Origin: Octopus bimaculoides
Lineage: Eukaryota
Assembly (NCBI RefSeq): GCF_001194135.2
Contig: NC_069004.1
Coordinates: 1,893,639-1,957,638, forward strand
Direction: 5' to 3'
DNA length: 64,000 nucleotides
The notes under the pieces were generated by a model that did no database searches, was not told where the DNA came from, and saw nothing but the letters and a program-made list of their open reading frames with translations. The position numbers and the translations under genes are program-made. Positions 3,884-51,323 of the stretch are shown one piece after another. Each line of letters begins with the position of its first letter. Positions within the stretch are counted from its first letter, which is position 1.

Positions 3884-4020
3884 CCAAAGCTGCTGGATTC
3901 TTGTGTGTCTTAGGAATCGGTCTAGGAATCGGTTCACTTTTGATCTACCGCTTATTCAAGAAATACCAATGTTCAAATGACTTGCCAGATAAATCTGACG
4001 ATGAATGCTATGTACGTCTG
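3884..4020 (+). CDS. Internal coding exon encoding a Gly-rich transmembrane/signal-anchor segment; probable 5' exon of the OTULIN-family gene
   Basis: Strong acceptor (ttttcttttcttttttacag|) and donor (CTG|gtaagg). Only one of three frames is open: (x)KAAGFLCVLGIGLGIGSLLIYRLFKKYQCSNDLPDKSDDECYVRL. Phase 1 in, phase 0 out, matching the phase-0 acceptor at 39529. The link across the ~35.5 kb intron is inferred; the start-codon exon was not found. Confidence 0.65.
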
Positions 4021-4821
4021 GTAAGGAATATTTACTATTTCTACTAATTCTACCAAAGCTCTTCTTACTGTACACTTCTACTAACGGTATCCATATATAT
4101 ATATTTCATGTGTTTCTACTGTATGTATAAACCTAATTTGTTATCATTTCAGCACAAAATATTGAAATAATCATTAAAAAAATTACTTAAATATTGTTGA
4201 TATTACTAATATTTTACTGGTGCTAAGGCAACAAACTGGCAAAATCCTTAGCAGACCAGGGGAAATTTTCAACAGCATTTCATTCATTTTTATATTCTGG
4301 GTTCATATTCTGTCAAAGTCGACTTTACCTTTCATCCTTTCAGGGTCGGTAAAATTAGTACCAGTTGTGCACTGGGGTTGACGTTATCGACCTACACCTC
4401 CCCTGGATTTGCTGGTCATGTGCCAAAATTTGGAACCAATGTTTTGTTGATTCTACTGTTAACAATACTGTTTCAGAATGTCCTCATATTGTTTTGAAAG
4501 GCAAACACACTCTGCCATTTAACTCTCTCATCTAACCATCCAGAGATTATCATCAGCTGATTAGCTACTGACTCCACAGTGGATGACTAAGACAGGACCT
4601 GTAACAGGAGTTCAACCAGTACATTGGGCTGAGGCCTGCAGGACTAAGGAGATCTCTGTAATTGTCTGCTGTCTCACACACACACATACATGTGCAGATA
4701 TACACATACAGATAAAGAGAGAGAGAGAGAGAGAGAGAGATTACAATTATTAATTGAACACAACTGATGCAAACACTTTCCATCTCCTCAGACGCATAAA
4801 AAGAAATATGGTCACACACAT

Positions 4822-4861
<40 letters not shown>

Positions 4862-6413
4862 GAGGGAAGAAGAAAATGAGAGAGAGAGAGAGAGAGAGTG
4901 GAGAGGGAAGAAGAAAATGAGAGACACATTAAAACGTCTGATGTCAACTAAATCAGTGTTGAATCAAAGATGCCAAATAAGCAGCACCAAAACAGCTGTG
5001 CCAAGATGTCTCGTATCTCTCTCTCTCTCCAGTTCCCAACTGATGCTTCTTCTTCAGCTAGAACATCTAATGTTGCAGTTAGCTTTAAATCATTTACCTT
5101 GGTTTTTTCTTCCTACTTTCCACATTTATTTACCTTTATTCACAACAAAGACAACATTTCAACAAAGAATTCGGAACAGTCCACCAAATAATCCTTCCTC
5201 CCCTACACAAATAATAATCAATAGATCTCAATCCTACCCACCATCATTTAATAACATGTACCAGCAACAAACCAGGTAGGAGCCCTAATTTGGTCACTCA
5301 ACTTGCAAGAAATAGCAGCCAAATATCCCTTTGAGCACACCCTACTGTCTTTATCCCTTCAACTGCAAAATTAAATTTCATGGTTGTTCCAGTAATGATG
5401 TTAAACCTCTTTCAAAAAATAGAATTGGTATTTTCTGCAAGTCACGTTGCTTCAATAAATTTGACATATTTCAACAAAAAATAGTTCCAAACATGACACT
5501 CCCCAACAAAAGCTAGATTGATGTGTAAAACCACTGGCAAAATCGCTAACACGCTGAACAGAAAGCTTCGTAATATTGCGCCTGTCTTTACGATCTGAGT
5601 TCAGCTTCTGCTGAGGTTGACTGTGATTTTTCATCCTTTCAGGGTTGATAAAACAAGTACCTGTTAAGCACTGGGGTCGATGTAATCGACTTATCCCCAC
5701 CCCCAAAATTCCAGGCCTTTGTGCAGTTTAGGGTAATCGAATTTTGGGTGGATATATCTGATTTCTGCAGTAAAAGGGTTAAAAGTAAAATGACATGTTG
5801 GATAATGTTCGTAGTTTATCATTTCGTGGATGGCATTAACTTTGTTCGTTTCATATTGAAAGAAAAGAGAAACAGAAAAGGTAAGAGTTGCCTCCCTTAC
5901 CTCCTTTTTCTTTCTCCTTTCTCATTCCGTATAAATGACTAATTAACTGTTAATTTATCCTCTTTTAACAGCGGACTAAATAGTCTTATAGCATATTTTT
6001 AATCCTAATGTAAACTAAGAGGAGGAACTGAAATTAATTATACCGTTGATTGAATAGATCAAAGTCATTTTATATATTAAAAAAATTGGCTCGACATGCG
6101 ATTAAAAAGAGTGTTCCTGTAATATTATTATGTACTGATTTTGTTCTTTATTTTTCTCCATATTTTTTTACTGTTTCTTTTGTAAAATATATTCTGTATC
6201 ACTGAACTATTTTATAGACTGTTCTAATTATGTAAATTACTCGCAACACCATCGTTTTGTATTTATATATCTATATGTGGACTATTTATAACACATACCT
6301 ACCTTTCCTGTTAAACTCTCCAGCTACTGTATAAAATAGGATTGGTAAAATACCACCAGAACATATAATGTACTATTAAGTTCTACCCATTATAACTTTG
6401 TTCCCCACCCCAG

Positions 6414-6465
<52 letters not shown>

Positions 6466-8213
6466 NNNNNNNNNNNNNNNNNNNNNNNNNNNNNNNNNNN
6501 NNNNNNNNNNNNNNNNNNNNNNNNNNNNNNNNNNNNNNNNNNNNNNNNNNNNNNNNNNNNNNNNNNNNNNNNNNNNNNNNNNNNNNNNNNNNNNNNNNNN
6601 NNNNNNNNNNNNNNNNNNNNNNNNNNNNNNNNNNNNNNNNNNNNNNNNNNNNNNNNNNNNNNNNNNNNNNNNNNNNNNNNNNNNNNNNNNNNNNNNNNNN
6701 NNNNNNNNNNNNNNNNNNNNNNNNNNNNNNNNNNNNNNNNNNNNNNNNNNNNNNNNNNNNNNNNNNNNNNNNNNNNNNNNNNNNNNNNNNNNNNNNNNNN
6801 NNNNNNNNNNNNNNNNNNNNNNNNNNNNNNNNNNNNNNNNNNNNNNNNNNNNNNNNNNNNNNNNNNNNNNNNNNNNNNNNNNNNNNNNNNNNNNNNNNNN
6901 NNNNNNNNNNNNNNNNNNNNNNNNNNNNNNNNNNNNNNNNNNNNNNNNNNNNNNNNNNNNNNNNNNNNNNNNNNNNNNNNNNNNNNNNNNNNNNNCATCA
7001 ACACGTATTGTTCAGTTTCAATTGCAAGTTGGTACCATCTTACCATTCAAGTGTGGGGAAAAGACCAAACATAAAATGGTGGTGGCAGTGGGGGGGGGGC
7101 AAGGGTGAGAGCAGCAATTTGTGGACTTGGAAAGGTATGAATATCACCACTTCCCATATTCCTCCACTGCAGATCCAGCACCTTCAGTAAAAGACTGTTT
7201 GTATTTTGTAGGTTCAGAAGTTTACTTCCCAACCACATGGTTCCAAGTTCAATCCCACTGCTTGACACATTCGGTAGATGGAAACTGAGAGAATCCCTTT
7301 GTATGTGTGTTTGTCCCCCATCACCGCTTGACAACTGGTGTTGGCTTGTTTACATCCCCATAACTTAGCAGTTATTCTAAAGAGATTGATAGAATAAGTA
7401 CCAGACTTTTAAAAAAAGAAGGGGGACAAGAAGTGCTGGGGTCAGTTTGTTTGACTAAACCTTTTAAGGCAGTGCTCCAGCATGGCTGCAGTCACATGAC
7501 TGAAACAAGTAAAGGACGTTTCTTTTTTTTTCTTTATCTTTCCTCTTGTCATTTAAAAAATGTTAAATTTTCATAAAATTTCCTGTCAGACTTCATTAAA
7601 CTTCCAATTTTATTTAAGCACAAAAAAAAAAAAAAGACAATAATTCCTTCTGGAATTTGCTACACGGAAGTTAATTATCAAATATTTCTTCCTGTATATG
7701 GTGTGGCGATTGTTTCTCCTTGAAATAGTTTCTTTTCAAAATCATTGTTGAAAATATCAAAAGTGTTTCTGTCTTGAATGACTGGAAGATTGTTTCTTTT
7801 AGGGAGATATTTGCGTTAATCCACAGACACGGGTTAAATAGTGAGAGGAAACGGCCTCTGAGTGACTGTTCCCAGGGAAATTACACTCTGCAGGTACCTG
7901 GGAATATTGTTGACAGCTAATGATCAACATGACAGTAAAAGGCTACAGTAAAGAGTTTATTTTCATTTGAGGTTACGGCAAGGAGCATGTTTTTTATCAT
8001 ATAACACAACTACTTTGTACTTTGGACACGGACACACACATACCTATATAGGTATATTTACATTCATATATATATATATATATACACACATAAATACATG
8101 CACTCACATAGATACATACATATATATATATATACACACATATACATATAAATATACATACATATATGTGTATGTGTGTATATATATTATTAGATAATAA
8201 ATCAAATGGTATA

Positions 8214-8266
<53 letters not shown>

Positions 8267-8655
8267 GTATATATGTATATAATATGTATGTATCCATATA
8301 TAATACATATATATACACACCCACAAACACACAAACACACACATACGTATGTCCTCCTCAATTGTTTCACGTGAGAAACATTTTCTTTTCTCTTTAAATG
8401 TGGGCAAAATAATTACCTTTTTCTGTTGTGAAACGAGCTAAAAGCAAAGCGGGGAGGGTCACGTTTGTGTGCAGGCCTGATAAATGGACTTCATTTGATA
8501 GGGTGTGAAAAGAGAATCCTAACGACAGCTCATATGTCTGTCCACCTTAACCAAACCAATGATTAATTTATGTTGATTTTTTTCTTTTTCTTTTTTTTTC
8601 AATAACATTTTCCTGGCATGAAATCATTACAGATTTGGAATTCTTTTATTCTTTC

Positions 8656-8689
<34 letters not shown>

Positions 8690-9589
8690 TTCCTTTCCAC
8701 GTTGTCATCAGCAGTGACAATAGTAGGAGTTGTTTGAAAGGTGTAACACACACATTTAGACAAAAATATTCAATGTTGATCCAAGCAGTCAGCCCGAATG
8801 GATTTTTAAACTTTACTAGACATGCTCGTAGTTTGTTCTGTTTGGCAAATTTGTAAATGTGAACTCCAGGTACTTAAAGAACACACACACACACACACAC
8901 ACAAACACACACTTATTTTCACTGGGTTTATTGTCAATATATTTCATCATAAGACGTAAGGATTAATATCAAATGAAATGGCTTTTTCCTGTCCGAAATT
9001 CCACAAGTAAGTATTCGAGTTGTTTATTAAAACATTTCTATTGCTGTGAGAAGTGTCTGTCTGTTTGTCTGTCTGTCGGAGAATTATTCGTTTTCCTTGA
9101 TGCAGTTAATGAATGTTAGTTATTACAGGCTGTGTGTCTGCGTATAGGTATTGATCTATGTATGCGTTTGCATGTGTGTCAGTGGGTTGGGAGACAAATC
9201 GAGTTTGCATGTGTGTGTGTGCATGTACGTGTGTGTGTGTATAAACAGATTTATTAACCTCATTCAGTAGATTATAACTACGTCAGCTGTTACTAAAAGC
9301 TTTTCGAAGACTTTATTGATATTTAGAATCAATGCAATAATAAACATCCAACATGAGTAAATGGGGACAGAAGCTGTTTGTCTTTGCTTTTGGCTTTTAT
9401 TTGTCTCAGTCATTGCGCTGTGGCCAAGCTGGAGCACAATCTTGGAGGGTTTCAGTGGAACAAATCCATCCCATTTTTTTTTTTCTATAAAGTCTGGTAT
9501 TTATTTTATCAGTCTCTTTTGGCAAACTGTTACAGGGGCATAAACAAACCTACACAAAGACACACACCTAGATTTACATATATATATAT

Positions 9590-14283: not shown

Positions 14284-14690
14284 GTACATATATTTTTGCA
14301 TGGTTGTTTCGTTTTATAATTATTTCTGCTTTTTCTCATTATGTCTTCCCCACCAGTCGTCGGTTTAGAATTCGCCAACATTTCCGTGCACTTATTCACA
14401 GACTCGGCGCAGGATGTGGCCATCTCTGCACCACCCCTTTGGCATGTAAGCAGGTGTGTATTGGTGACGTAGAAACTTTGGCCTTTTTTTTTTTTTTACA
14501 CTTCCCCGACCACCACCACCACCACCTCATCTTGTTTTTTTTTTAATTTTTACCCCCTCCTCTCCTGCCTCTGTCTCCCTCTTTCTAAATATATGTGTAT
14601 GTGTGTGTGTGCATATTTTACATACACATACACACACATATTTATAAATAAATACATATTTTGATATAAATATATATATTTTATATGTAT

Positions 14691-20202: not shown

Positions 20203-21239
20203 TTTAAAATGCCAGCTGCCCTGACTCACTCAATCATGCCTTTCTAATAACTAGAACTTTTCATTAAATTTGTAGCAATATAAACGAGGTAGGGGTGGTG
20301 GTAAGCAGTTTCATTAACATTTTGATAGATTACTACAGAGGGGTAAGAGACCATTGTTATAGTCAAGAGAGAGAGAGAGAGAAGGGTTGAAGAGGGAAAT
20401 TATTAAAAGTGGGAGCGGATCATCTCCACCACCATAGATGTAATTAAAATATCATAACTTATCGCTGCTTGGTTGCTTCACAATCAACAAGTTCCAGTTT
20501 GAACATTAATGGAAAGAAATCAAGTTTTTGTTGGGGTTTTGTTTGTTTTATTTTTCTGAGCTTTTTTTTTTTTTGCTATAAAGGTAAAAAAGAGATTGTG
20601 AACAACTTCTTAATTGTCTAAAGTAGAATAATTGCTTTTTATTTATCAAGAAAAACCACTGTACAAAAGAAAACAGAAAATTTCTATCATCACCATCATC
20701 ATCATTTAGCATTCAGCTTCTAAGCTTGCCTGGGTTGGATGGCTTGATAGGGTCAGATCAATTGGAGGACTGCATCATGCACCAATGTCTAGAGCTGGAT
20801 GCTCTCCCTGTCATCAACCACATTACAACAGAGTGTACTGGGTGTATATTGTGGGATCAGCACTGATGCTGATAATCACCTCTTTACTTTGCAGGGAACA
20901 AGAGAGATTGATGGGATTAGTGAGGAGATTAAAGAATAGGAACAAAAAGAGTTTAACTTTGTGGCATTTAGATTATTCTATCGAATGGGAGAACCCTTCA
21001 GTCATGAATAACCATGGCATTGCAAATAGAAAGTTCCGCTCCAAGGCACAAGTCCGGGTAAGGTGGCAGTAAAGGTAACCTCTAAGAGGGAGTGGCCTGA
21101 GTGGAGAAGAGATGGAGGTCTTGGAAAGGAGACATAAGGGGACAGAGTGGTAAGAAAAAAAAATAGTAAAATTGTAATAAAAAAAAAGGATAATCAGAAA
21201 CCAGGCAATCAAGCTCCTTCCATTATACATTGTCCCAAA

Positions 21240-21455
21240 GGCAGCGAGCTGGCAGAAACATTAGTACACCGAGCGAAATGCTTAGCAGTATTTCGTTTGT
21301 CTTTACGTTCTGGGTTCAAATTCTGCCGAGGTCGGCTTTGCCTTTCATCCTTTTGGGGTTGATAAATCAAGTACCAGTCACGTACTGGGGATCAACCTAA
21401 TTGACTGGTCCCCTCCCCAAAAATTTCGGGCCTTGTGCCCAGAGTAGAAAAGAAT
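21240..21455 (+). mobile_element. SINE family A, short-tail variant (representative copy)
   Basis: ggcagcgagctggcagaa...gggttcaaattc...ggggttgataaa...ccttgtgcccagagtagaaaagaat. Other copies at about 4225-4440, 5525-5725, 18500-18685, 44626-44830, 46575-46685, 47449-47660 (+) and 54610-54830, 56540-56745 (-). Confidence 0.85.
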
Positions 21456-24223: not shown

Positions 24224-24547
24224 ATGGCCTGGAGATTAATTCAGATTCATGAAGGTGACAAATTAAATTTCCAACATAAGTTTCCAAACATCAGTACCAG
24301 TTTCCATGAAAGTAGCCAACATAAGTATAACTTAAAGCTTCCCGATGATAAATTCCATACTCGCTTACTTATGAACTGCAGTACAAGCTGGACTGCCGGC
24401 TATGGCTGTGTGCAGAGGAAAAAACTGAAAGGATTCAAAGTCTACAGGAGACGAAAGAAATACGAAAACGGGGACATAGTTTTAAACAATATGTTTCCTG
24501 CTAAAACTCGGTCTCTCTACATACTCTCCCGGCTTCTCCGGCAACTT
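24224..24547 (+). CDS. Candidate alternative first exon (or phase 0-0 cassette from 24245) of the OTULIN-family gene
   Basis: 108 non-repetitive codons from ATG (MAWRLIQIHEG...RKKLKGFKVYRRRKKY...LSRLLRQL) ending exactly at a consensus donor CTT|gtaagt in phase 0; CpGs locally retained; no family recognised. Confidence 0.45.
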
Positions 24548-31974: not shown

Positions 31975-33055
31975 TTTGTTACATATAAGATCAGCAGAAA
32001 TAATCAGGGATCACAGAATAAGCAAGGAATGGCAACTATAAAACCTTCCTTCCCAACTTTCCAGTAAAAAAATAATTCTTAGGTACATTATCAATCGTCA
32101 CCTGAATGAATACTTAACCCAGAAATATGTTTTTGACCTTTATTCTACTCTTAAATATATCGTTCCTTCAATGGCCTCCACTTAACTGAACTTCCCTTGA
32201 TTGTTTCTATAGCCATCAAAAAATACACTCATTGTTCCTCCAACGTAATGCATGTACGTAAGAGCATGTACACGTGAGAGCATGTGAGTGCATGCACGCA
32301 CACGTGTGTGTGTGTGTGTGTGTGTGTGTTGTTCTTTTTTTAACTTTTCTACTTGTTTCAGTCATTGGACTGCAGCTATTTTGGAACACCACCTCATAGG
32401 GTTTGTTGAACAAATCGACCTTCGCTATAAGTCTGGTGCTTACTGTCAGTCTCATTTGCCAAACCACCAAGTTACAAGGATGTAAATAAACCAACACTGG
32501 CTGTTAAGTTGTGGCAGGGGGATGAACACAAAGACACACACACACATATGACATGATGAGCTTCTCACAGTTTCCGTTTGTCTTTGCTCGTCCTCAGTCT
32601 GGAGTAGCAATGGCCTGCTAGTTGGGGATGCCTGTCAAGCTCTCCTAAACATAATTCTAGTGAAACAAATTCACTGATTTCAAAAATAGAAAGAATACAT
32701 TTCTAAATCTCTCACAGAGATTTATGCAGTAGTGATGCCATAAAGTAGTTCTATGCTGTCAACTTAATGTGACAGTCCCATGAAGGGAATAATACTAATA
32801 ATCCTTTCTATTTTAAGCACAAGACCTGAAATTTTGGGGGTGGGGTTGAGTGATTACCTCAACCCTAGTGTTTTACTGGTACTTAATTTATCGATCCTGA
32901 AAGGATGAAAAGCAAAGTCAACCTCAGCAAAATTTGAACTCAGAGCGTAAAGACGGAAGAAATGGCACGAAGCATTTTGCCTGGTCTGCTGGAGGAGTGC
33001 ATTGAGATTCATCGATTTTATAGTGATGGTTCTTGTCAATTAGATAACGTATTAA

Positions 33056-33288
33056 GGCGGCGTGCTGGCAGAGTGGTTAGCACGCCGGGCGAAATTCTTA
33101 GCGGTATTTCGTCTGCTGCTACGTTCTGAGTTCAAATTCTGCAGAGGTCAACTTTGCCTTTCATCCTTTCGGGGTCGATTAAATAAGTACCAGTTAGGCA
33201 CTGGGGTCGATATAATCGACTTAATCCGTTTGTCTGTCCTTGTTTGTCCCCTCTGTGTTTAGCCCCTTGTGGGCAGTAAAGAAATAAG
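33056..33288 (+). mobile_element. tRNA-derived SINE family A, young full-length copy with long-tail variant
   Basis: A-box-like GGCGTGCTGGCAGAGTGG, B-box GAGTTCAAATTC, core tttgcctttcatcctttcggggtcga; direct repeat taacgtatt at 33045-33053 and 33290-33298. Confidence 0.85.
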
Positions 33289-33973
33289 TTAACGTATTTA
33301 TTACATAATCAACCTAGAAGGCATTTGGCTCAACGTCCTTATTTCATTAAGATGTCTTCGTCGTGTCGTGTGATCAATTAAAGTCTTTAGAACAGATTTT
33401 GAGGCTTCCTTGAGAAAGTTGTCTTCTAAACAATAGACAGATTACCCTTGACTCACATTTGCTGAAATTCACATAATCAGTTGTGTTTTGGGTCACGAAG
33501 CTTTAGAATCTAAAGTCATTAGGGAAAACTGCGGCCCGCTTCGTGAAAATGGTTGCTCAATGCCTGCTTTAGATATCTGTAATCACAAATATATATTCCC
33601 TCTCCGTTGTTAATGATTTGTAAGACTGAACCAGTTTACTTGTTGTTGTGGTTGACGTCGTTGCTATTATTGTTCTTGAACCCCAAATTTGCTTTAATTG
33701 AACAATACCTATCATCAGCGATGCCCATATCATGGCTATCCCCTCTTTCTTTCCAAAACATAATGCATAACATATATATATATATATATATATATATGTT
33801 ATCGTACATCTCTTTCCATGTTTGGGGATTGTTGTTTTTTTTATATACAAGTATTTCATTTGACGGAGACTTCGCTGTTATTTCTAACCGTTCGAGTAGC
33901 TGATATAGGGACCCTCCCCCTCCTTGGTCCGGCTTGATAATGCTGTTGAAATTTAGGACTGCGTTGACCCAGC

Positions 33974-37979: not shown

Positions 37980-38522
37980 TACACACACACACATNNNNNN
38001 NNNNNNNNNNNNNNNNNNNNNNNNNNNNNNNNNNNNNNNNNNNNNNNNNNNNNNNNNNNNNNNNNNNNNNNNNNNNNNNNNNNNNNNNNNNNNNNNNNNN
38101 NNNNNNNNNNNNNNNNNNNNNNNNNNNNNNNNNNNNNNNNNNNNNNNNNNNNNNNNNNNNNNNNNNNNNNNNNNNNNNNNNNNNNNNNNNNNNNNNNNNN
38201 NNNNNNNNNNNNNNNNNNNNNNNNNNNNNNNNNNNNNNNNNNNNNNNNNNNNNNNNNNNNNNNNNNNNNNNNNNNNNNNNNNNNNNNNNNNNNNNNNNNN
38301 NNNNNNNNNNNNNNNNNNNNNNNNNNNNNNNNNNNNNNNNNNNNNNNNNNNNNNNNNNNNNNNNNNNNNNNNNNNNNNNNNNNNNNNNNNNNNNNNNNNN
38401 NNNNNNTTTCATGAGCCAAAATAGAAACGGGGTGGGGGAATGATTCCAAAAGGAAAAATAATTAACCCAAGGAGCAGCAGCAACACATTTCAACAGAAAA
38501 TAATAACAATAACAACAACAAC

Positions 38523-39528: not shown

Positions 39529-40999
39529 GAATCTGTTGACAGTGTTTTTCACAAGGAAGAAATGGGTCATGGTTACTCAAGCCATGACTTACCAGCCGCT
39601 CACTATACCCCCGATACGGGAGTTAGCTTTCTCTTAGATTCTCGTAAAGAAATACCAAACCAAGAAGCTGTACATATATCAGAGACCCCAGTTAGGCACC
39701 GCAAGTTGGGACCAATTACTCCTTCAAAAGACTGCTGCAAACCTGAAAATTCTACTGTTGATTCCGACATGAAATTGCTTCTGACTGATGAAAGATGGTT
39801 AGAAGCTGCCAGTGGTGGTGGTGGGCATCAGTCACAGGACGATGACTGCAGCATTAGTTCATGTCCACAATCATTCACATCATCGTTGGTGGGTAATTAC
39901 AGCCCACGTTCACTGAGGGAACGGAATCTGGTGATCGAAAACGACACTGACCGATCAGAAAAGACCAGAAGTACAAATAATTCACCAAATAAAGAAAACC
40001 CATTACCAAAGAATCCTCACAATGACAAGGTTAACATTAGTAAAAACTTGAAAGAAAGCAGTGTTTTGTTGACTCCACCATCTGAAGAGGACTCCCCTTC
40101 CTCACCTTATCAACCTCTAATAAAAAAAACAAAATTGTTAGAAGCTGATTCTGACAAAGAGGATGATAGTTCCGGAAGTACAAAAAATTATTTGAACTAT
40201 AACATTAGAGAGTCTCCTGATGATGACAATGACAATAGCATCTTTAGTGAGTTATCATTCTCATCAAAGAGCTTGAGTCCTCCTTCCAGACGGGACTGGA
40301 GTTTAGATGACGAAGAAAAAGATTTGTTGTCGCCACTATGTCACTCATCCAGTTTTGACCAATTTCCACAACTCCTGCTGCGACGGTTACGTGAATGTAA
40401 AAGTGTCTCCCCAGAATCTAACAGATCGATAACATCAGAGGATTGTCTCAGTCCAGACAGTCAAATAGAAGGAATTGTCCTTGAGCGCTGTGACAGCATC
40501 GATTCATCTATATTTGAGATAATTAACGATGTACCACAACAAATTGAAAAAGATGAGGTTTTGCGATTCCACGGCATCGAGGACGAACTACAAGATTTAA
40601 ATGATGAAATGGATGACTTAATGTCTGGTCTTTCTAATTTAAAATCTAAATGTTCAGGAATTAATCCTGAAGCAACAGACTTACAGAGACAGATGCTTCT
40701 ATCTGAACAAGCATACAATGCTTTACAGAAAGCGCGGTCCCACTGTGCAAAGAGGCCTGGGAGTTTAACTCCGGATTCTTCAATAGGGGACTTGCAATCA
40801 CCAGCAGATAACTTTTTGTCTTGGGACATGACAGATTTCCAACTTGATGGTTTATCTTATGACAATGAATCCAACGTGATTGGTATCTTAAATGAGCAAA
40901 ATTATGTGCCTTTTTCTGTGGACTCAGACAATAACTTTGACTTGTCTACACTCCAACATCCATTCCACAGTGATAATCAATACTATTCAGTTACTGAAG
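39529..40999 (+). CDS. OTULIN: OTULIN-family gene, large exon (~490 aa acidic, Ser/Asp/Pro-rich, probably disordered N-terminal extension)
   Basis: 1471-nt open frame (ORF 39490..41007) bounded by acceptor tttctcttttcag|GAA and donor GAA G|gtgagt; phase-1 end joins GA at 47304 to make Gly and continues into the OTU domain. Confidence 0.85.
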
Positions 41000-42632: not shown

Positions 42633-42674
<42 letters not shown>

Positions 42675-44114: not shown

Positions 44115-44168
<54 letters not shown>

Positions 44169-44931
44169 GGTCCTCTTTTAGTTTCCATCTACCAAATCTA
44201 CTAACAAGGCTTTGATTGGTCCAAAGCTATAGCAGAAGACTATAGGCAGCATACAGTGGGAGTGAACCCAGAATCCTATGGTTGGTTAACAAACTCCTTA
44301 ACCACACATCCACATCTGCACCTGTCTTCTCATACATTCTCTATTGTTCTCACCTACTTGACAGGTTGCCATTAAATACAATGAAAGAACACACAAACAC
44401 ATACGTACTTCTTACCTCAATCTCTCACTGAATAGATAAGGTGAACATTTGAGCTACAGACGTATTCACTGTCACATTAAACAGTAAGCACATACATGCA
44501 CCCTCTTCGTTTCTTTTAAAGTATTTAGCTGTTGCTTTGTCTGATCTGTTGCAGTCAGGAACCATTAATTAAACTGTTGCAAAAATATGCTTTGCAGTAT
44601 TTGTTTTGGCTCAAGGCTGTGAGTTGGCAGAAACGGTAGCATGCCGGGCGAAATGTTTTGCAGTATTTTGTCTGTCTTTACGTTCTGAGTTCGAATTCCA
44701 TTGAGGTTGACTTTGCCTTTCATCCTTTGAAGGTCGATGAAATAACTACCAGTTGTACTCTGGGGATTGATGTAAACGAATTACCCCCATCCCCTACCTG
44801 AAATTTAGTACAGAAATTTGAAATCAGTATTTGTTTTGGCTCTTTATTTTCTAGGTTCAAATCTTGCAGAGGTCAACATCACCTATTGACCCTCCAGTCA
44901 AATACTGTTTGGTAGGGTGGGATCATGTTAA

Positions 44932-45151: not shown

Positions 45152-46985
45152 TTAATCAACTGACACCTTGGTTCAAATTTCTGGTCTTGTGCTTTTGTTA
45201 GAAATTATTCTTAAACAAGATGGAGGAGGGAGAGTTGGGTAGATTATTACCACAAAGAAAGTTATTTTTCATTTCTGGGCCTTTCCATATTTATATCTGT
45301 AACATTATAGCATATGTTGATATGATGATTAGAAGCTGCTGTTTGGCATCTCAGACATGCTGATACTTCACTCATGCTTGTGCATCACTCATGTCAGTGC
45401 TTTACTCATGCTAGCACCTCAATCGTTCTGCTTCCTCACTCATACTTGTGCCACAATAAAACACACCCAGTACAATCCATAAAATCATTGGCAAACAGGT
45501 GAAGAAAGTGTCGGGTTCAAGAGAAACTTTAGTCTTGCCTCACCAAGGACATGACAACATCTTTAGTTTTGGCGTCAAAGAAAAATGCACCATTTACACA
45601 CTATAAAAGGGTTCGGTGTTAGGAAGAGCGTCCAGCCATAAAAAGTAACACAAAATGATAAGACTTACAAGCATGGCCTAGTTGTCCCCATTTGTCCATG
45701 AAAATTGTGGATTCAAATAAAAACTGACTCAGACTCTGATCGCATATTCAGTTGACGTAAAATGTTGATGTACTCCCATAATAAAGTTAGTGCTATCACT
45801 AACCTGTTTGATCAGGTTCAATCAAGCCACCATCAGCCATTGTAGGTTGTATAAGAACGAAGTTGTTTATTTAGTAAAAAAGACTCTTGCTGACTTTATA
45901 CAATATAAATATATCTTGTAGGTATCGGCATATTTAGCTTACCCTATCGGATGCTAAACTATTTAGTTCTATTCATTTAGTGAGAAATGTGTAACTAACT
46001 TTAAACAATGTAAGCAGAAATGATAATCGTGGAGTGCATTCAAAAAATACACACACATAAATACATATATGTGCATACATTCACAGTAAACACCCATCAG
46101 TGTTTTTCCACATCAACGTTTTCCCATTTTCCATGTTACCCCACATTCATGTATATTTGACTTGTGTTTCTACAAAATTGCTGACCCAGTCTCTACAGCC
46201 TTCTTTTCCTTCTTGCTTTCAGACCATTTTACTGAAACCACAAACAAAACTCTCCCCTAAGTTAAGCAAAAACATTTTAGGTGTTTCAGTTGCCTTCCAT
46301 AGCTTTATTTTGTTTTATTATTCTCACATTTGGGTAACACTTCCTTTTTTTTTTTTTACTTAATATTTTCTTGTTTGACTCTTTTTATTTTTTAGTTTAG
46401 TCATCTTGACCAAACTTTTGCATGCAACACTCTTCAGGTTATGGAGCCAAAAAAAAAAAAAACAATTCTTTACATTTGCTTCTTACTTTAATCCTTTTAA
46501 GACCAACCTGCCTGAGACCGCTCCTGGTTTTATGATACAAACTTCCTGTTTCAAAGTGATCTAAATTAAAACTTTCCTTGGGTGGGGTTCGATAAATTAA
46601 GTACCAGTTGCGTACTGGATCGATCTAATCGACTGGCCCCCTCCCCAAAAATTTCAGGCCTTGTGCCTAGAGTAGAAAAGATTAAAATTTGCTTTGTAGC
46701 CATGTTTGCAGTTGGGGTCTTTGTAAAACTTGTCTTTTGCATGAACACATGGCTTATCCTGTAGATTATTTCTTTGGCATATNNNNNNNNNNATGACAAA
46801 TTATGTTTTGATAAGAACTTTGAATTGCTTGATATTATAAACAAATAAAAGAAATTATTTATACAGCAGAAGGTTATCTCAATTATTTTCTTCATAAATA
46901 TTGATATTAATTATTGATATTAATTATTGATATTAATTATTATTATAATAGGTGGCAAGCTGCCAGAAATGTTAGTTGTGTGCGA

Positions 46986-47017
<32 letters not shown>

Positions 47018-47303
47018 TTTGTTTTGTTTTGTTTTTATTTGTGGGGCAACAAGGCTACCATTGGTTCTGCAGTTTCAGCATCTTAACAGCAGGACCATTA
47101 GCTTCAGAATTCCATTGGTTTTAAAATTGGACTAACATAACAAAATAACCATCTGATTCTTATTCTTGTAACAACTGGAGTTCATTTTTAGGGCTTTGTA
47201 AGTTCTCAAATATTTAGAATTTAGTGTTTGCTTGCTTTTCTTTTTTCTTTTTTGATGGTGGTGGTCATGTTTTGTAAATCATTTATGGCTTCACATTTTA
47301 CAG

Positions 47304-47413
47304 GAACAGAAGATGATAAAAACATCATGAATGTAGGTCCTCGAAAAAATATACAAGAGTATGCTAAAAACCAATGGCGTGGGGAAACTCCAGAAGCTCA
47401 AAGATATCTCGAA
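47304..47413 (+). CDS. OTULIN: OTULIN-family exon, start of OTU domain
   Basis: ttttacag|GA ACA...CTC GAA|gtaagt; (G)TEDDKNIMNVGPRKNIQEYAKNQWRGETPEAQRYLE resembles the OTULIN/FAM105A stretch 'SV.pe.Di..Yc..EW(R/K)G.T' (recalled from memory, not searched). Confidence 0.9.
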
Positions 47414-48134
47414 GTAAGTATTTATGTTGTTGTTATTTTTATTTTGAAGGTGAACTGGCAGAACCGTTAGCACGCTGGACGAAATGCTTAGCGGTATTTT
47501 GCCCATCACTACATCCCAAGTTCAAGTTCAGCCGAAGTTGACTTTGCCTTTCATCCTTTCGGTGTCGATAAATTAAGTACCAGTGAAACATCGGGGTCAA
47601 TGTGATCGACTTAACCCCTCCCAACAAATTTCAGGTCTTGTGCCTAGAGTAGAAAGGGTTATTTTTATTTTGACATGGTGCTGGCATAGTCGTTACGGTT
47701 AAGAAGCTCTCTTTGCGACTACATAGTTTCAGGTTCAGTCCCACTGCACAGCACCTTGGGCAAGTGTCTTCTACTATAGCCCTGGGCCAACCAATGTGTT
47801 GTGAGTGAATTTGGTGAACAGAAACTGTGCAGAAGCTTAGCATACACATGCGTGCATATATCTTTGTGTTTGCTCCCACCCACAATTTGACACCTGTGCA
47901 GTACTGTTCAATTTAATGGTCTCAAGAGGCATTAAAAACATACATGCTGTCTGGAGATTTATAGAATTTATGAGAAGCAGAAGTGAAACATAAGCACAAT
48001 ATATCTAAGGCAGTCTATATCTAAATACATAAATCGGTCTATTAAGCAACAAGTTTTAACTTTTCATACTTTAATGAAGCTATCAAACTTGTATAACTTT
48101 TACTTCATAAACTTTCATTCTCTCCATATTTCAG

Positions 48135-48287
48135 GCTTATAATCAAGTACAACAGACTTTCGAATGCAACTACATACGAGTTATGCGTGGAGATAACTAC
48201 TGCGGAATTCGTTCCTGTATAGTTCAGGTGTTAATAAACGGAATTGCAATGAAACAGGAATTTGCCACAGCAGAAATTGTAAAGAAT
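48135..48287 (+). CDS. OTULIN: OTULIN-family exon carrying the catalytic Cys
   Basis: tttcag|GCT...AAT|gtaaga, 51 codons: AYNQVQQTFECNYIRVMRGDNYCGIRSCIVQVLINGIAMKQEFATAEIVKN. RGDNYC is the OTULIN Cys-loop; TGC at 48201-48203. Below the ORF-track cutoff. Confidence 0.93.
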
Positions 48288-49258
48288 GTAAGACAATATT
48301 TGCTATAATCTCAGCTGCAGAATGGTTTATGAAGTTAATTTTTCCTTCTATCTTTCCCACTTAGTCTGGGTTGAGCAAACCAATGGCTTGTAAATAGCCT
48401 CGCAAACAATAATCAGATTGGTGATGGCCACAGCAGAGATAGGCAAAGTTTAATCTAACCTTAGCATTTGCTGTTTTATCTTTAGTGCCGTACATCCCAG
48501 GTTTTGTGATTAATGAGCCTCGTAATACTGCTGGTATGTGTGTGTGTGTAGAGTGAGAGAGAGAGAGAGAGGAAGGGTGGCTTGATGTCATAGTTGTATT
48601 TTGGGATGTTGTACATATAAATAACTCTTGTTATTAATTAGAGGAGGGTGTAAAGGAGGCAAACTGGCAGACTTATTACAACATTGGACAAATGCCTAGT
48701 TGTATTTCTTTGACTCCTTACATTCTGAGTTCAAATTCTGTCAGGGTGAGCTTTGCTTTTCATTTCTTTCTCATCATCATTAATTAACATCCATTTTCAA
48801 TGCTGGCATGGGTTGGATGGTTTGATGGGAGCTGCACCAAGTTCCATTCATCTGTTCTGATATGCTTTATACAGCTGGATGCCCTTCCTAACGCCAACCA
48901 CTTTACAGAGTGCACTGGGTGCTTTTTATGTGACACCAGCACCAGTGCTTTTTTACATGGAACTGGGTTAGTAAAGTACCAGTGAAGTACTGGGGGTCAA
49001 TGCAGCCAACTAACCCCCTCCTCTAAATTACTGGCCTTGTGCCAAAATTAGAAAGAATTGTTAAATACTAAAGTGTGAGACGTGCATTATCTTACTAAGA
49101 CTGAATGTATTCCTCCATAATTCCAGTTCACTTTTTTGTTGTTAAGTTTTGACATTTCTCTTTCCTAATGAAGTCTAACTTTATTAATCCATAAAGTGTT
49201 GCAGCTTTCAACCACTCAAATGCTTACCTCAAGTTTTAAGCACAAAAAACATTTACAC

Positions 49259-49315
<57 letters not shown>

Positions 49316-49738
49316 ATATCTGATGACATGAAAGATGCAGGGACATATTAGCTTCATGCCAAATTTCAACAGTGCATATTCAGGGAACAAACAAATGTTT
49401 TTTAGTGCATCAAAGCAAGTAATATAAGCTCAACTTCACATAAAGGACCCAGGGTGAATATCTTTTTTTAAAGACATTTTTGGTGGGGAAAAACACTGCA
49501 AGTTATATATCATCAAGCATAGTAAACCTGTTACATTTACACAAAGCTAAAAAGTTTAACATTTCATAAGTCATTTTAATGTGTATTTTTTTTTTCTGTT
49601 ACTTGCATGCTTGGAAAGTTATATAGAATGTCATTGTCACTGCCTTGACCTTCTTAAAGTTAGATGTATATAATGCAAAGATTTGAAGCCTAGATATTTT
49701 CTCTGACATTCATCTAAATAATGTCTATACTTTTCTAG

Positions 49739-49861
49739 CTTTTAAACCAATATTTGGAGGAACCAGAATGGGAACTAAAGCGGTGGTCTTTTGCCAGGCG
49801 TTTAAACTACACTGATGTGAAAGAAATGCTGTTCTCCTGTATTGATGAATTTTATTCACAG
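49739..49861 (+). CDS. OTULIN: OTULIN-family exon (OTU helical region)
   Basis: ttttctag|CTT...CAG|gtactt, 41 codons phase 0-0: LLNQYLEEPEWELKRWSFARRLNYTDVKEMLFSCIDEFYSQ; fills the expected gap between the Cys-loop and the SRDTS exon. Confidence 0.8.
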
Positions 49862-50342
49862 GTACTTTGATTTTTATCTCTATACATAACTAAAATATGA
49901 GTTTTGGTGCTTAAGAAAGAAAAGCTTTTCAGTTTTCTGTCATTTTTCATCGAAGTCTACTAAACTGACATTGACCCTCTTACGAACCTCCTCTCTCTGC
50001 TTCATTTGTTGACCTCTAAATGCCTTTAGATGTCCATCTTAACACCTAACATCATTGTCCACATTTGTCAGTCAGTCTCCAACTAAAACCTGATTCAGTT
50101 ATTTTATGTTCTGTGCTGAAAGAGAATCACATATGTGTGTCATTATCATCATCCTCATCGTTTAACATCCACCTTCCATGCTGGCATGGGTGGGATGGTT
50201 TGACAGGAGCCAGCCAGGCAGAAACCTGCACCAGACTTCTGTGACTGTTTTGGCAGGGTTTTTCCAGCTGGATGCCCTTCCTAACATCACACACTCAGCA
50301 GAGTGGACTTGGTGCTTTTTATGTGGCACAAGCACAAGTGAG

Positions 50343-50382
<40 letters not shown>

Positions 50383-50620
50383 AGTACATACAAACAAACA
50401 ACAGGCTCCTTTCAGTTTCCATTTCCCAAATCCACAAGACTTTAACCAACTCAATACTATAGTAGAAGACAATTGCCTGAGGTGTCACACAGTGGGTTTG
50501 AACCTAAGACCAGATGGTTGGGAAGCAAGTGTCTTAACCACACAGCCACACCTTGATAGAGTTATTTCTTATTGTTTCTCGGCAGATAAAACAAATATTT
50601 CTTTCTTTCTTTTATTTCAG

Positions 50621-50887
50621 CATAACTTAGCTTTAGAGATGGACAAGACAGAGAGAGAAGACTGGGTGGAGGACCTCTTAAACAGAGAACCAATTGTTGA
50701 TATAAAAATAATGGAAGCTGCCAAATTGCTTATGATGCTTGATATAATTGACATTTATAAAAACCAACAAGCCGAAGATTATCCATTGTTCGTCCATTAT
50801 ATTTTTTCTCGGGATACATCTGACACTCCTGCAAAACTGTTGAAAAACATCCTGAATGCAGTCGGAGATTCTGGCAGTTTAGAACAG
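50621..50887 (+). CDS. OTULIN: OTULIN-family exon
   Basis: tttatttcag|CAT...CAG|gtatgc, 89 codons: HNLALEMDKTEREDW...EAAKLLM...YIFSRDTSDTPAKLLKNILNAVGDSGSLEQ; matches the family motif 'F(A/S)R(D/E)TS.dP..l..NhLN.VG..ggLEQ'. Confidence 0.93.
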
Positions 50888-51143
50888 GTATGCATCCTTT
50901 AGAAATGATGATTTGATTTCTTAAAAAAATAATAAAGTGTGAGGAAGAGGAGAGATCTAACTTTTGAAACAGGGCCTTTCTTGCCTGAAATATCAGTCAC
51001 TTCTTCATCACAGCAAATTTATTCCATCTGGTAAACTGCTTTGTTTCTTGTTTATTTTTTAAGATGTTTGAATGAAGAATTTTTTGATGGCCTTAAGATG
51101 AAAGTTGATCATTAATTGTTATGTTTTTTTTTTTCCTTTTCAG

Positions 51144-51323
51144 ATTGATATGTGCCTCTTAGGACATGCACTCGGTGTAAAAATAACGGTGCCTCGTCTA
51201 TATCGATATGGTAGAGATGATTTTATACATGGATTTCCTGATTTACTGAACCAAAATTGGGACGAGGTGTATCTCATTACCGAAGACGATAGACATTACA
51301 ACATTATAATAAAAGATAACTGA
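51144..51323 (+). CDS. OTULIN: OTULIN-family terminal coding exon with catalytic His and Asn
   Basis: ttttcag|ATT...TGA: IDMCLLGHALGVKITVPRLYRYGRDDFIHGFPDLLNQNWDEVYLITEDDRHYNIIIKDN*. EDDRHYN is the OTULIN His-loop (His 51294-51296, Asn 51300-51302). Confidence 0.93.
   Translation: MDMCLLGHALGVKITVPRLYRYGRDDFIHGFPDLLNQNWDEVYLITEDDRHYNIIIKDN

Follow-up and report, generated by a model that had tools for sequence, protein, structure and literature searches.

Octopus bimaculoides LOC106875898, a predicted single-pass membrane protein with a seemingly intact OTULIN domain

Can one gene join a membrane anchor to a working OTULIN-type deubiquitinase? The question is raised by the Octopus bimaculoides locus LOC106875898, in a 64,000-nucleotide stretch of contig NC_069004.1 (hereafter the window), where an earlier note had proposed that a hydrophobic exon is spliced to distant exons for an OTULIN/FAM105 domain. 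Judged from its sequence, the gene pairs a membrane-spanning segment with a seemingly working copy of OTULIN, a deubiquitinase that strips off linear ubiquitin chains. We consider it probable that its product, co-orthologous to vertebrate OTULIN and OTULINL and of pre-duplication type, is a single-pass membrane protein.

Gene structure

A seven-exon model on the + strand spans positions 3884-51323 (Table 1). Its spliced product of 812 amino acids is contained, residue for residue, in RefSeq isoforms X1, X3, X4, X5 and X6 which, like the other RefSeq isoforms of the gene, are computed models. The protein reaches up to 945 amino acids and ends in ...IIIKDN. Exon A is entered in phase 1 and left in phase 0, and its product, (A)KAAGFLCVLGIGLGIGSLLIYRLFKKYQCSNDLPDKSDDECYVRL, comprises the transmembrane segment, a basic juxtamembrane stretch (RLFKK) and an acidic tail; splice flanks, translation and RefSeq match all agree with the earlier description of a Gly-rich hydrophobic segment followed by RLFKK and a phase 0 end. 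Its reading as the N-terminus has to be given up, as the exon is internal and is preceded by a 133-aa exon-1 region, encoded upstream of the window, which includes a conserved juxtamembrane domain. The exon-1 boundary (between ...CLGD and G) is backed by read-through ORFs P0285 and P0286.

The proposed junction 4020->39529, which connects the transmembrane exon to the OTU exons, is present in RefSeq models from three octopod lineages, namely O. vulgaris, O. bimaculoides and Argonauta, and the same splice is found in decapodiform intronless contigs of 3.0-3.9 kb from RNA-type assemblies. Intronless contigs that carry the whole ORF with this junction come from several sequencing runs (L001-L004, P0083 and P0115). 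Exon B (1471 nt; acceptor 39528/39529, phase 0) is 94% identical to its O. vulgaris counterpart, and exon E, missing from the earlier list, is 98-100% identical to octopod orthologues. None of the 11 runs of N in the window overlaps an exon, those closest to an exon edge lying at 46783-46792 (512 nt away) and 37995-38406 (1123 nt away). Since the spliced product is an exact RefSeq substring and is collinear with cephalopod cDNA-like contigs, the gaps conceal no constitutive coding exon.

Table 1. Features of the locus in window coordinates
Feature	Position	Strand	Evidence or detail
Exon A, second coding exon of isoform X1	3884..4020	+	AG/GT flanks, RefSeq match, tblastn with orthologues
Predicted transmembrane helix AAGFLCVLGIGLGIGSLLIY, 20-aa glycine zipper	3889..3948	+	hydropathy, conservation, arthropod homology
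Alternative 5' exon of isoform X7 (no transmembrane segment), RRFRIRQHF...PLACKQ	14358..14453	+	exact peptide match, tblastn; GT donor 14454
Alternative first coding exon of isoform X2 (no transmembrane segment), MAWRLIQIHEG...SRLLRQL	24224..24547	+	exact peptide matches; donor GTAAGT
Exon B, 490-codon Ser/Asp/Glu-rich linker with conserved short motifs	39529..40999	+	open frame, splice sites
Internal ATG, first of exon B, context GAAGAAATGG	39562..39564	+	isoform X8 start (MGHGYSS...)
Exon C, OTU domain start	47304..47413	+	Tyr91 and Trp96 equivalents in EYAKNQW, 47360-47377
Exon D with RGDNYC (48186-48203)	48135..48287	+	catalytic Cys codon 48201-48203
Exon E LLNQYLEEPEWELKRWSFARRLNYTDVKEMLFSCIDEFYSQ	49739..49861	+	phase-compatible AG...GT open segment
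Exon F, OTU helical arm	50621..50887	+	part of the seven-exon model
Exon G, EDDRHYN (51282-51302) and stop codon	51144..51323	+	Asp336 equivalent 51285-51287, His 51294-51296, Asn 51300-51302
First OTU exon of a separate short tandem paralogue without transmembrane segment	63840..63953	+	tblastn 95% identity, P0035 residues 25-62

The catalytic domain and its vertebrate relatives

The C-terminal domain matched Pfam PF16218 with 219 bits (E = 7.7e-65) over profile positions 3-265 of 265, and human OTULIN chains in phmmer with E = 6e-40. RGDNYC and EDDRHYN lie in downstream exons, as the earlier note had it, namely D and G. The domain aligns end to end with the catalytic domain of human OTULIN (FAM105B; MEROPS/Pfam Peptidase_C101), at 30-31% identity, and keeps Cys129, His339, Asn341, Asp336, Tyr91 and Trp96; in a 20-sequence alignment Tyr91, Trp96 (which we take to have a role in ubiquitin binding), RGDNYC and EDDRHYN are invariant. 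In OTULIN, Tyr91 coordinates the Asn and Asp336 is inhibitory (PMC3690481). The AF2 model of the domain (pLDDT 86.6) gave Foldseek TM-scores of 0.83-0.90 with OTULIN/FAM105A (0.84-0.89 with OTULIN structures) and 0.55-0.6 with otubains. The proposed union of anchor and putatively active enzyme in one gene is borne out, at the level of sequence, as to splicing, the full set of catalytic residues and an OTULIN-like fold.

An intact protease could still be specific for something other than Met1 linkages, such as a different chain type or a ubiquitin-like modifier. Its main role might also be that of a binding scaffold, as in mammalian OTULINL. The modest identity to human OTULIN would fit such readings, as would the differences at ubiquitin-contact positions (the Leu259 equivalent is Tyr, and NTQK is replaced by ETPE; numbering from sequence) and the lack of a PUB-interacting motif (PIM) that would link the octopus protein to HOIP. 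We regard them as unlikely nonetheless, given the invariance of the Cys/His/Asn triad, of the inhibitory Asp336 and Asn-coordinating Tyr91, and likewise of Trp96.

In the tree, the octopus protein is co-orthologous to OTULIN rather than its one-to-one counterpart, the OTULIN/OTULINL split being a jawed-vertebrate event. Human OTULIN is a soluble protein of 352 aa, recruited to LUBAC via an N-terminal PIM (Tyr56) and with a PDZ-binding motif at its end (PMC7862380); by contrast, the octopus protein has an N-domain, a predicted transmembrane helix, a linker of ~510 aa and no PIM. OTULINL (FAM105A) shares the OTULIN-type fold (TM-score of the octopus model to 6drm, 0.83-0.88) and, in the passage of PMC7862380 that cites Ceccarelli 2019, has an N-terminal hydrophobic membrane-localisation segment. 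Its anchor lies ~30 aa ahead of the OTU domain, whereas the long linker separates the two in octopus. In mammals OTULINL has no catalytic activity and carries Asp139/His350/His352 (PMC7862380) in place of the Cys, His and Asn found in octopus. The inactivation of FAM105A has been dated to the mammalian radiation (PMC5381560), and OTULINL of sturgeon (Huso) and lungfish (Protopterus) has a hydrophobic anchor together with intact RGDNYC and EDDRHYN. The division into a soluble active OTULIN and a membrane-bound inactive OTULINL, which the earlier note had ascribed to vertebrates, thus applies to mammals only.

The hydrophobic segment

The 20 residues at 3889-3948 have a mean Kyte-Doolittle hydropathy of 2.25 (19 residues), and are of transmembrane grade because their Hessa apparent free energies add up to a negative value (-0.55 kcal/mol). 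GxxxG pairs are formed by G7-G11 and G9-G13, in the numbering of the string first reported. A conserved domain of ~58 aa, from an exon outside the window, lies N-terminal to the segment. Between octopus and decapodiforms the transmembrane segment is 93% identical and the N-domain 76-78%, so that both outrank the catalytic domain (49-50%) in conservation. In hhalign, the mollusc and arthropod anchor modules matched at 94.5% (E = 8e-8). The 93% identity and this match speak against a hydrophobic stretch that arose by chance.

We weighed the possibility that the segment does not cross the bilayer and is instead a monotopic wedge, a kinked hairpin, or a helix that is buried in a core or serves oligomerisation; N-domain and OTU domain would then both be cytosolic. 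In water, its central GIGLGIG run destabilises a helix, and the AF2 model of the N-domain and transmembrane module, of low confidence (pLDDT 47), kinks and interrupts the helix at this run; also, the octopus flank charges are symmetric and the 134-residue N-terminal region has no signal peptide. However, 20 unbroken apolar residues whose Hessa sum is below zero suit a single span and fall short of a classic membrane hairpin, which takes ~30 residues, and Gly-rich GxxxG helices are common among true transmembrane segments. In most family members, moreover, a conserved Lys or Arg just N-side and Tyr-Lys/Arg just C-side bracket the span. We therefore judge a non-crossing segment very unlikely.

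Phyletic spread

The same architecture of N-domain, glycine-zipper transmembrane segment, long linker and intact OTU domain is shared by bivalves, gastropods, crustaceans and hemimetabolous insects. Genera whose intact OTU domain has the module ahead of it are Saccostrea, Mytilus, Patella, Littorina, Physella, Oratosquilla, Schistocerca, Nilaparvata and Frankliniella. The long homologues (for example Saccostrea XP_062617477, Patella KAK6191668, Mytilus XP_063401172, Schistocerca XP_046985769 and Oratosquilla XP_076045085) share with octopus the juxtamembrane N-domain, the pattern ...K-A-[AST]-G...LG[IV]G...Y[KR]L[YF], the long linker and a C-terminal OTU domain with RGDNYC and EDDRHYN. Those of molluscs additionally have the octopus-type internal MGxxxS and linker motifs; those of arthropods have a different N-domain and no MG motif. 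Their database titles are 'uncharacterized', 'OTULIN', 'serine-rich adhesin for platelets-like' and 'dentin sialophosphoprotein-like', and our literature search found no paper describing their anchor.

Since this build recurs across molluscs and arthropods, predicted membrane tethering looks like the normal form of protostome OTULIN and not an octopus oddity; nor is a predicted anchor with an intact OTU domain in one protein unique to octopus, given the other protostomes and the sturgeon and lungfish OTULINL. Mollusc and arthropod anchors are homologous, and therefore the suggestion that the combination is ancestral holds for protostomes. For bilaterians it finds no support: the hemichordate, crinoid, tunicate and cyclostome OTULINs examined have no such hydrophobic segment, and hhalign detected no homology (<1%) between the vertebrate OTULINL anchor and that of protostomes.

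Isoforms and the tandem paralogue

The anchored product is represented by X1 and X3-X6; isoforms X2, X7 and X8 lack the transmembrane segment, and a soluble paralogue lies beside the gene, both of them additions to the anchored form proposed earlier. The first nine residues of X7 have no match within the window. The first coding exon of X2 is also found in O. sinensis model P0006 and matches no Pfam family. The ATG at 39562, in a strong context, is the counterpart of a conserved mollusc MGxxx[ST] motif of myristoylation type, and its homologous Met is the first residue of a Littorina model (P0094) and of two ORFs derived from contigs (P0005 and P0017); in octopods the motif reads MGHGYS, with a His at +3 that the PROSITE myristoylation pattern disallows. 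The short tandem copy is the orthologue of an O. vulgaris otulin-like protein of 301 aa, the remainder of the gene lying past the window end, and according to the tree it originated within octopods.

The anchored form might then be minor or non-productive, the working products being the Met-Gly protein from 39562 and the short paralogue. The three RefSeq isoforms without the segment, the Littorina model and ORFs that begin at the same Met, and the position of this ATG as the first of exon B in a strong context speak for such an arrangement. Yet no part of the protein is better conserved than the transmembrane segment and N-domain, which surpass the catalytic domain, and their retention from molluscs to arthropods is hard to square with an isoform that has no function. 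Transcript-like contigs from several runs also carry complete ORFs in which N-domain, transmembrane segment and OTU domain are joined. A minor role for the anchored form appears quite unlikely. In that case octopus OTULIN would resemble its vertebrate namesake in being essentially soluble or lipid-anchored.

Proposed topology and mode of action

Our preferred reading remains a membrane-spanning OTULIN, in which the ~58-aa N-domain of X1 would be followed by the 20-residue glycine-zipper helix, the basic RLFKK stop, a disordered-looking linker of ~510 aa (residues 161-670) with conserved short motifs, and the C-terminal OTULIN domain. The helix would insert with the N-domain luminal or extracellular, although in X1 a stretch of 134 N-terminal residues would then need to be translocated with no signal peptide. 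A cytosolic place for the linker and OTU domain is favoured because the isoform lacking the segment begins at the conserved myristoylation-type Met-Gly. Use of the positive-inside rule to place the OTU domain in the cytosol is upheld as a family-wide trend only (flank charge +0.36 on the N side and +2.57 on the C side); in octopus itself, the 15-residue flanks carry +2 each and are not decisive. The opposite, type II insertion would keep the N-terminus cytosolic and turn the linker and OTU domain towards the lumen or the outside, with no action on cytosolic ubiquitin. The long His/Arg-rich N-terminal region of X1, devoid of a signal peptide, and the equal octopus flanks are compatible with it, but the linker and OTU domain are also made without transmembrane or signal sequence and are then necessarily cytosolic, positive charge is family-wide higher on the C flank, and a thiol protease with an Asp/Ser-rich linker of phosphorylation-like motifs is unlikely to function in the secretory lumen. 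We consider type II insertion extremely improbable.

With the cytosolic orientation that we favour, the OTULIN domain, which has every residue for substrate-assisted cleavage of Met1-linked diubiquitin, would erase linear ubiquitin solely near one membrane. Molluscs have a writer of such chains, as HOIP and HOIL1 orthologues have been reported in Aplysia (PMC9334734). Among the sequences examined, the PIM is missing in 13 of 14 from protostomes and present in 9 of 10 deuterostome OTULINs. Membrane tethering appears to substitute for HOIP-mediated recruitment. Alternative 5' exons that skip the transmembrane exon yield a form starting at the conserved internal Met-Gly, possibly N-myristoylated, and the octopod tandem duplicate provides a bare soluble OTU domain.

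Other membrane-associated or linear-specific deubiquitinases

USP30, in the mitochondrial outer membrane, and USP19, tail-anchored in the ER, are similar in that one hydrophobic anchor holds a cytosol-facing deubiquitinase on a single organelle surface; they differ in their linkage preferences and in their USP fold, which is unrelated to the OTU fold of the octopus protein. We know of no transmembrane-anchored, active OTU-family enzyme with Met1 specificity. OTULIN homologues of Rhabdochlamydia (P0049, P0050 and P0057), bacterial proteins that are presumably effectors taken from hosts, retain RGDNYC and EDDRHYN and have a hydrophobic N-terminal segment. SnOTU, an OTU-type linear-specific deubiquitinase of Chlamydiales (PDB 8cmr), is a distant match to the octopus model (TM-score 0.51).

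Exon structure and isoforms of the long gene

The window is AT-rich (37% GC), with many microsatellites and 11 runs of N. The exon that the earlier note had read as encoding a hydrophobic segment (exon A; coordinates are collected in the table) has an AG acceptor with a polypyrimidine tract and reads ...AKAAGFLCVLGIGLGIGSLLIYRLFKKYQCSNDLPDKSDDECYVRL, followed by a GTAAGG donor. It is as described there, leaving in phase 0. Exon A enters in phase 1 and therefore cannot be the first exon. The acceptor preceding position 39529 opens a 1471-nt exon, and we completed the model with a human OTULIN probe and phase-compatible AG...GT segments. The 812-aa spliced translation is contained, residue for residue, in RefSeq isoforms X1, X3, X4, X5 and X6 of LOC106875898, recorded on a 36-Mb contig and present in RefSeq as an uncharacterised locus. 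None of the 11 N runs touches an exon (the nearest lie 512 and 1123 nt off an exon edge), and orthologous proteins map exon by exon across the A/B and B/C junctions with zero unmatched residues. The exact RefSeq match and this mapping argue that no constitutive coding exon is hidden in the gaps.

The join of 4020 to 39529, which gives ...ECYVRL/ESVDS..., is also found in protein models of O. vulgaris (P0001 and P0013) and Argonauta hians (P0002), in the cuttlefish-type proteins P0003 and P0020 and in another decapodiform protein, P0004. The last three come from contigs of 3.1-4.1 kb, from several sequencing runs, which hold the whole 2.5-2.8 kb ORF with no introns; since the octopus gene spans >47 kb, these contigs represent spliced transcripts. 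The junction proposed in the earlier note thus has RNA-level support in relatives, while in O. bimaculoides itself the evidence is the RefSeq models. P0001 (CAI9739962.1) was dropped as a reference, as it is a chimeric-looking model in which the Cys exon is missing and the 3' end is made up of exons from the downstream paralogue; P0013 (CAI9739964.1, intact) and the O. bimaculoides isoforms were used instead. In Argonauta, the last exon of the long model P0002 is common to the short gene P0036.

The hydrophobic exon does not encode the N-terminus of the protein. In X1 (945 aa) 133 residues precede exon A, rich in His and Gln at first and then forming the conserved block PPLKGTLVLFPPSWDTLTQCWKEL...RKRLILYFVFRGTSFRVCLGD, so that exon A is internal. 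The N-termini of X1, X3, X4 and X5 had no match in 1-3883 or in the rest of the window; the 5' end of the gene is outside it. In other cephalopods, ORFs that read through the donor of exon 1 stop at ...CLGD/G, which confirms its phase-1 boundary. The first exons of X3-X6 are alternative, upstream and beyond the window. X2 and X7, in contrast, have 5' exons within the 35-kb intron, and the exon encoding the transmembrane helix (TM) is skipped. No family matched the N-terminal peptides of these two exons, which may be in-frame leader ORFs with true initiation at 39562. This position, the first ATG in exon B (context GAAGAAATGG), is the start of X8. Given the TM-skipping exons and the X8 start, the gene is predicted to yield both anchored and anchor-less proteins. 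Beside the anchored form described in the earlier note, TM-less isoforms and a soluble paralogue exist.

Features of the window and conserved motifs of the long gene (positions in the window)
Feature	Position	Strand	Basis or remark
Exon A, TM exon	3884-4020	+	splice flanks, phases
Exon B, linker	39529-40999	+	open frame, acceptor
Exon C, OTU domain start	47304-47413	+	OTULIN probe, phase-compatible splice segments
Exon D, RGDNYC	48135-48287	+	motif, OTULIN probe/phase-compatible segments
Exon E, not listed in the earlier note	49739-49861	+	phase-compatible AG...GT segment
Exon F, helical arm	50621-50887	+	OTULIN probe, phase-compatible segments
Exon G, EDDRHYN and stop	51144-51323	+	motif, OTULIN probe/phase-compatible segments
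X7 alternative 5' exon	14358-14453	+	RefSeq isoform
X2 alternative 5' exon	24224-24547	+	RefSeq isoform
Internal Met-Gly and second motif	39562-39636	+	homologous positions in database proteins P0085, P0267, P0250, P0225, P0086
Exon B motif GNYSPRSLRERN	39892-39927	+
Exon B motif SSVLLTPPSEED	40057-40092	+
Exon B helical motif RFHGIEDELQDLNDEMDDLMSGL	40564-40632	+
Linker motif 1, SLxGNxSxxSLxERN			conserved cephalopods-bivalves
Linker motif 2, SSVLLTPPSEED (same motif as above)			conserved cephalopods-bivalves
Linker motif 3, FxQxLLxRLxE			conserved cephalopods-bivalves
Linker motif 4, RRSxSLD-like site			conserved cephalopods-bivalves
Linker motif 5, helical IEDELxDIxxEF segment			conserved cephalopods-bivalves
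Short tandem OTULIN-like gene, exon	63840-63953	+	95% identity to residues 25-62 of 301-aa O. vulgaris 'otulin-like' protein
SINE-like repeat, copies including	4236-4394, 5589-5693, 21238-21406, 32843-33300, 44613-44783, 47455-47617, 54646-54761, 56585-56747, 57365-57598

A complete catalytic domain

The OTU domain matched Pfam PF16218 (Peptidase_C101) with 219.4 bits (cut-off 27; E = 7.7e-65) over profile positions 3-265 of 265, and phmmer against PDB sequences gave human OTULIN (E = 6e-40) and FAM105A (E = 1.8e-34). RGDNYC and EDDRHYN, already noticed in the downstream exons, align with human OTULIN and confirm an intact triad, equivalent to Cys129/His339/Asn341. Tyr91, Trp96, Arg-Gly-Asp-Asn-Tyr-Cys129 and Glu-Asp336-Asp-Arg-His339-Tyr-Asn341 are invariant in a 20-sequence alignment from chlamydiae to reptiles. 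In OTULIN, His339 is kept inactive by Asp336, which the proximal ubiquitin then displaces with its Glu16, and Asn341 is positioned by Tyr91 (Keusekotten et al., PMC3690481); Asp336 and Tyr91, on which this substrate-assisted catalysis depends, are conserved in the octopus protein. An AlphaFold2 model of the domain (pLDDT 86.6) gave Foldseek TM-scores of 0.83-0.90 and an rmsd of 2.3-2.5 Å to 3znv (OTULIN) and 6drm (FAM105A), against only 0.55-0.6 for the otubains OTUB1 and OTUB2. Judged by its residues, the octopus domain holds everything known to be required for Met1-specific cleavage. Human OTULINL, in contrast, is a pseudo-enzyme with a disrupted triad (Asp139/His350/His352; reviewed in PMC7862380), whereas the octopus protein keeps Cys, His and Asn.

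A highly conserved predicted anchor and its probable topology

By hydropathy the segment encoded by exon A, AAGFLCVLGIGLGIGSLLI, is TM-grade: its Kyte-Doolittle values average 2.25 and its Hessa free energies sum to -0.55 kcal/mol. The core of the earlier reading, the union of an anchor with an intact OTULIN domain, proved right at the sequence level. Identity between octopus and decapodiform proteins is 93% over the TM and RLFKK, 76-78% in the N-domain, 45-49% in the linker and 49-50% in the OTU domain. Such tight conservation makes a plain greasy anchor unlikely; a second helix, the protein's own or a partner's, probably packs onto its glycine-zipper face. A profile of the N-domain and TM module alone (A1), retrieved nothing but four fragments of this gene from a 5.8-billion-protein set, with no other proteins and no new taxa. 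AlphaFold2 of this module gave a pLDDT of 47 and a pTM of 0.25, from which a fold is not assignable, and Pfam searches of the N-terminal 219 aa and the linker gave only sub-threshold noise (DUF4692, E = 0.18; PigL_N, E = 0.02).

The positive-inside rule had been invoked to place the OTU domain in the cytosol. The trend across 28 family members agrees (mean flank charge +0.36 on the N side and +2.57 on the C side, the C flank being more positive in 17/28), but the argument is weak for the octopus protein, whose 15-residue flanks carry +2 on either side of the TM. A stronger argument is that the linker and OTU domain are also made without a TM or signal sequence, and so must work in the cytosol. 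This TM-less form, together with the family charge trend, favours an N-out, C-in topology for the predicted anchor; less probable alternatives are a monotopic wedge that does not span the membrane and insertion in the type II orientation. By analogy with OTULINL, the target membrane may be the ER.

An internal Met-Gly and a motif-bearing linker

The motif Met-Gly-x-x-x-[STAGCN] occurs once per sequence in 15/15 mollusc-type sequences, 55-90 residues past the TM. It is followed, 10-15 residues further on, by a second conserved motif (AHYTPDTGVSF in octopus, VYYSPQYGVAL in Littorina; consensus (V/A)xY(S/T)PxxGV(A/S)(F/L)). RefSeq X8 of O. bimaculoides, a Littorina isoform and two contig-derived ORFs start exactly at this Met, which has the look of an alternative start giving an N-myristoylated product. 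In octopods, though, position +3 of the motif is occupied by His, a residue excluded by the PROSITE myristoylation pattern and a poor fit to the consensus. Five short motifs are kept in the linker from cephalopods to bivalves, and suggest that it would be a regulated scaffold rather than a mere spacer. The exon B motifs GNYSPRSLRERN, SSVLLTPPSEED and RFHGIEDELQDLNDEMDDLMSGL, shared by cephalopods and bivalves alike, matched no Pfam family.

A predicted membrane-anchored OTULIN group in protostomes

The OTU domain, taken as query in an exhaustive HMMER search, found 315 proteins, among them many of 650-1270 aa that share the octopus plan: a short domain ending [DE]xxK, the segment A-[AST]-G-x-x-[CL]-x-LG-[IV]-G...Y-[KR]-L-[YF] and, after a long linker, an OTU domain at the C-terminus that keeps RGDNYC and EDDRHYN. 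Named members come from oysters, mussels, limpets, Littorina and Physella, and from mantis shrimp, locusts, a planthopper and thrips; the last four now put names to OTULIN-bearing arthropods, Drosophila being without OTULIN. The protostome TM-anchored group is defined in this analysis. The octopus gene has its juxtamembrane N-domain, a glycine-zipper TM with K/R before and Y-[KR] after it, the long linker and the intact OTU domain, the N-domain exon lying beyond the window and the parts from the TM exon onwards being seen directly.

In hhalign the anchor modules of molluscs and arthropods matched each other along the TM and its juxtamembrane stretch (94.5% probability, E = 8e-8). In contrast, either protostome profile against the vertebrate OTULINL N-terminus gave <1% (0.1-0.6%), which leaves homology of the two anchors unsupported. 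Their positions also differ: the membrane-localisation segment of OTULINL lies ~30 aa before the OTU domain, whereas some 590 aa separate the octopus TM from the catalytic Cys. A neighbour-joining (NJ) tree of OTU domains, a simple distance tree that gives the order of events rather than fine detail, tracks the species tree (molluscs monophyletic at 95%, arthropods at 98%). It places the OTULIN/OTULINL split within jawed vertebrates (99% bootstrap), with molluscs branching outside, so that the octopus gene is not 1:1 orthologous with vertebrate OTULIN and is, on these sequences, a co-orthologue of OTULIN and OTULINL. The module match and the tree following species argue that the anchor is ancestral for protostomes. 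To that extent the earlier suggestion of an ancestral state holds, but no protostome-type TM segment was found in the hemichordate, crinoid, tunicate, lamprey and hagfish OTULINs sampled.

OTULIN proper has an N-terminal PUB-interacting motif (PIM) that binds HOIP, in contrast to the octopus protein. No [DE][MLIV]Y stands anywhere ahead of the OTU domain in the octopus protein, or in 12/13 other protostome sequences. The PIM was present in 9/10 deuterostome OTULIN sequences sampled. It reads acidic-acidic-[MLI]-Tyr, lies just ahead of the OTU domain and was seen in hemichordates, a crinoid, a tunicate, cyclostomes and reptiles; in the database proteins P0044, P0052, P0058, P0047, P0063, P0039, P0268 and P0096 it is 45-130 aa before RGDNYC. 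HOIP docking and TM anchoring thus appear, from motif content, to be mutually exclusive, with a TM and no PIM in protostomes and a PIM and no TM in deuterostome OTULINs. The hemichordate OTULINs P0268 (Ptychodera) and P0096 (Glandiceps) are 900-1100 aa long and carry the PIM and MG[LT]S[HQ]S but no TM of the protostome type. The N-terminus of the Glandiceps model, multi-hydrophobic and unrelated, may stem from a fused neighbouring gene.

The earlier note had taken as established that vertebrates divide the family into an active soluble and an inactive anchored protein. This holds for mammals, to whose radiation FAM105A inactivation is confined (Vlasschaert et al., PMC5381560), but sturgeon and lungfish OTULINL break it. 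The proteins of Huso huso (P0042) and Protopterus annectens (P0043) go under the name 'inactive ubiquitin thioesterase OTULINL' but combine a hydrophobic N-terminal segment with RGDNYC and EDDRHYN; 'inactive' is probably wrong for both. An anchor with an intact triad is therefore not unique to the octopus gene. Squamate OTULINL (P0059 and P0061) keeps the Cys and ends in EDDRHYH, with His for Asn; one rodent OTULINL has lost the Cys. We predict that non-mammalian OTULINL would be an active membrane deubiquitinase. Candidatus Rhabdochlamydia has full-length OTULIN homologues (P0049, P0050 and P0057; 30-35% identity) in which the triad is intact and a hydrophobic segment lies at the N-terminus. 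They are probably host-derived effectors; a linear-specific OTU is known from Simkania (PDB 8cmr).

Knowledge of linear (Met1) ubiquitin signalling is almost wholly mammalian, with OTULIN soluble on LUBAC and OTULINL an unexplained membrane-bound pseudo-enzyme. The OTULIN of molluscs and many arthropods is predicted to be membrane-anchored, catalytically complete and without the HOIP-binding motif, a combination suggesting that the early role of the family may have been to erase linear chains locally, at a membrane. Anchored protostome OTULINs also give OTULINL an evolutionary context. A bolder scheme, which we consider rather improbable as a whole, would make them receptor-like TM deubiquitinases, in which the extracytosolic N-domain and glycine-zipper helix would link the erasure of linear ubiquitin in the cytosol to an intramembrane partner or to a cue from the lumen or the cell exterior. 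Membrane tethering would then be the original mode of OTULIN targeting, replaced later in deuterostomes by PIM-PUB docking onto HOIP, and the vertebrate OTULINL anchor would be a separate re-acquisition. The N-domain, TM, MGxxxS and linker motifs provide a compact, testable set. No description of the protostome anchored architecture was found in the literature; apparently nothing has been published on it, nor on the extreme conservation of the TM, the start at the internal Met-Gly or the TM/PIM dichotomy.

Tandem paralogue and remaining sequence

The exon of a short OTULIN-like paralogue lies ~12.5 kb downstream of the stop of the long gene. Its 301-aa O. vulgaris counterpart has no TM and intact RGDNYC and EDDRHYN. 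The NJ tree places the duplication within octopods (100%); the arrangement parallels the tandem OTULIN/OTULINL pair of vertebrates, but arose independently. Most long ORFs of the window are microsatellite or N-run artefacts; eight long intronic ORFs matched no Pfam family, and Rfam gave nothing. Both strands carry copies of a SINE-like interspersed repeat of ~170 bp, at least 11 in all, with 72-90% identity and all of them intronic or intergenic.
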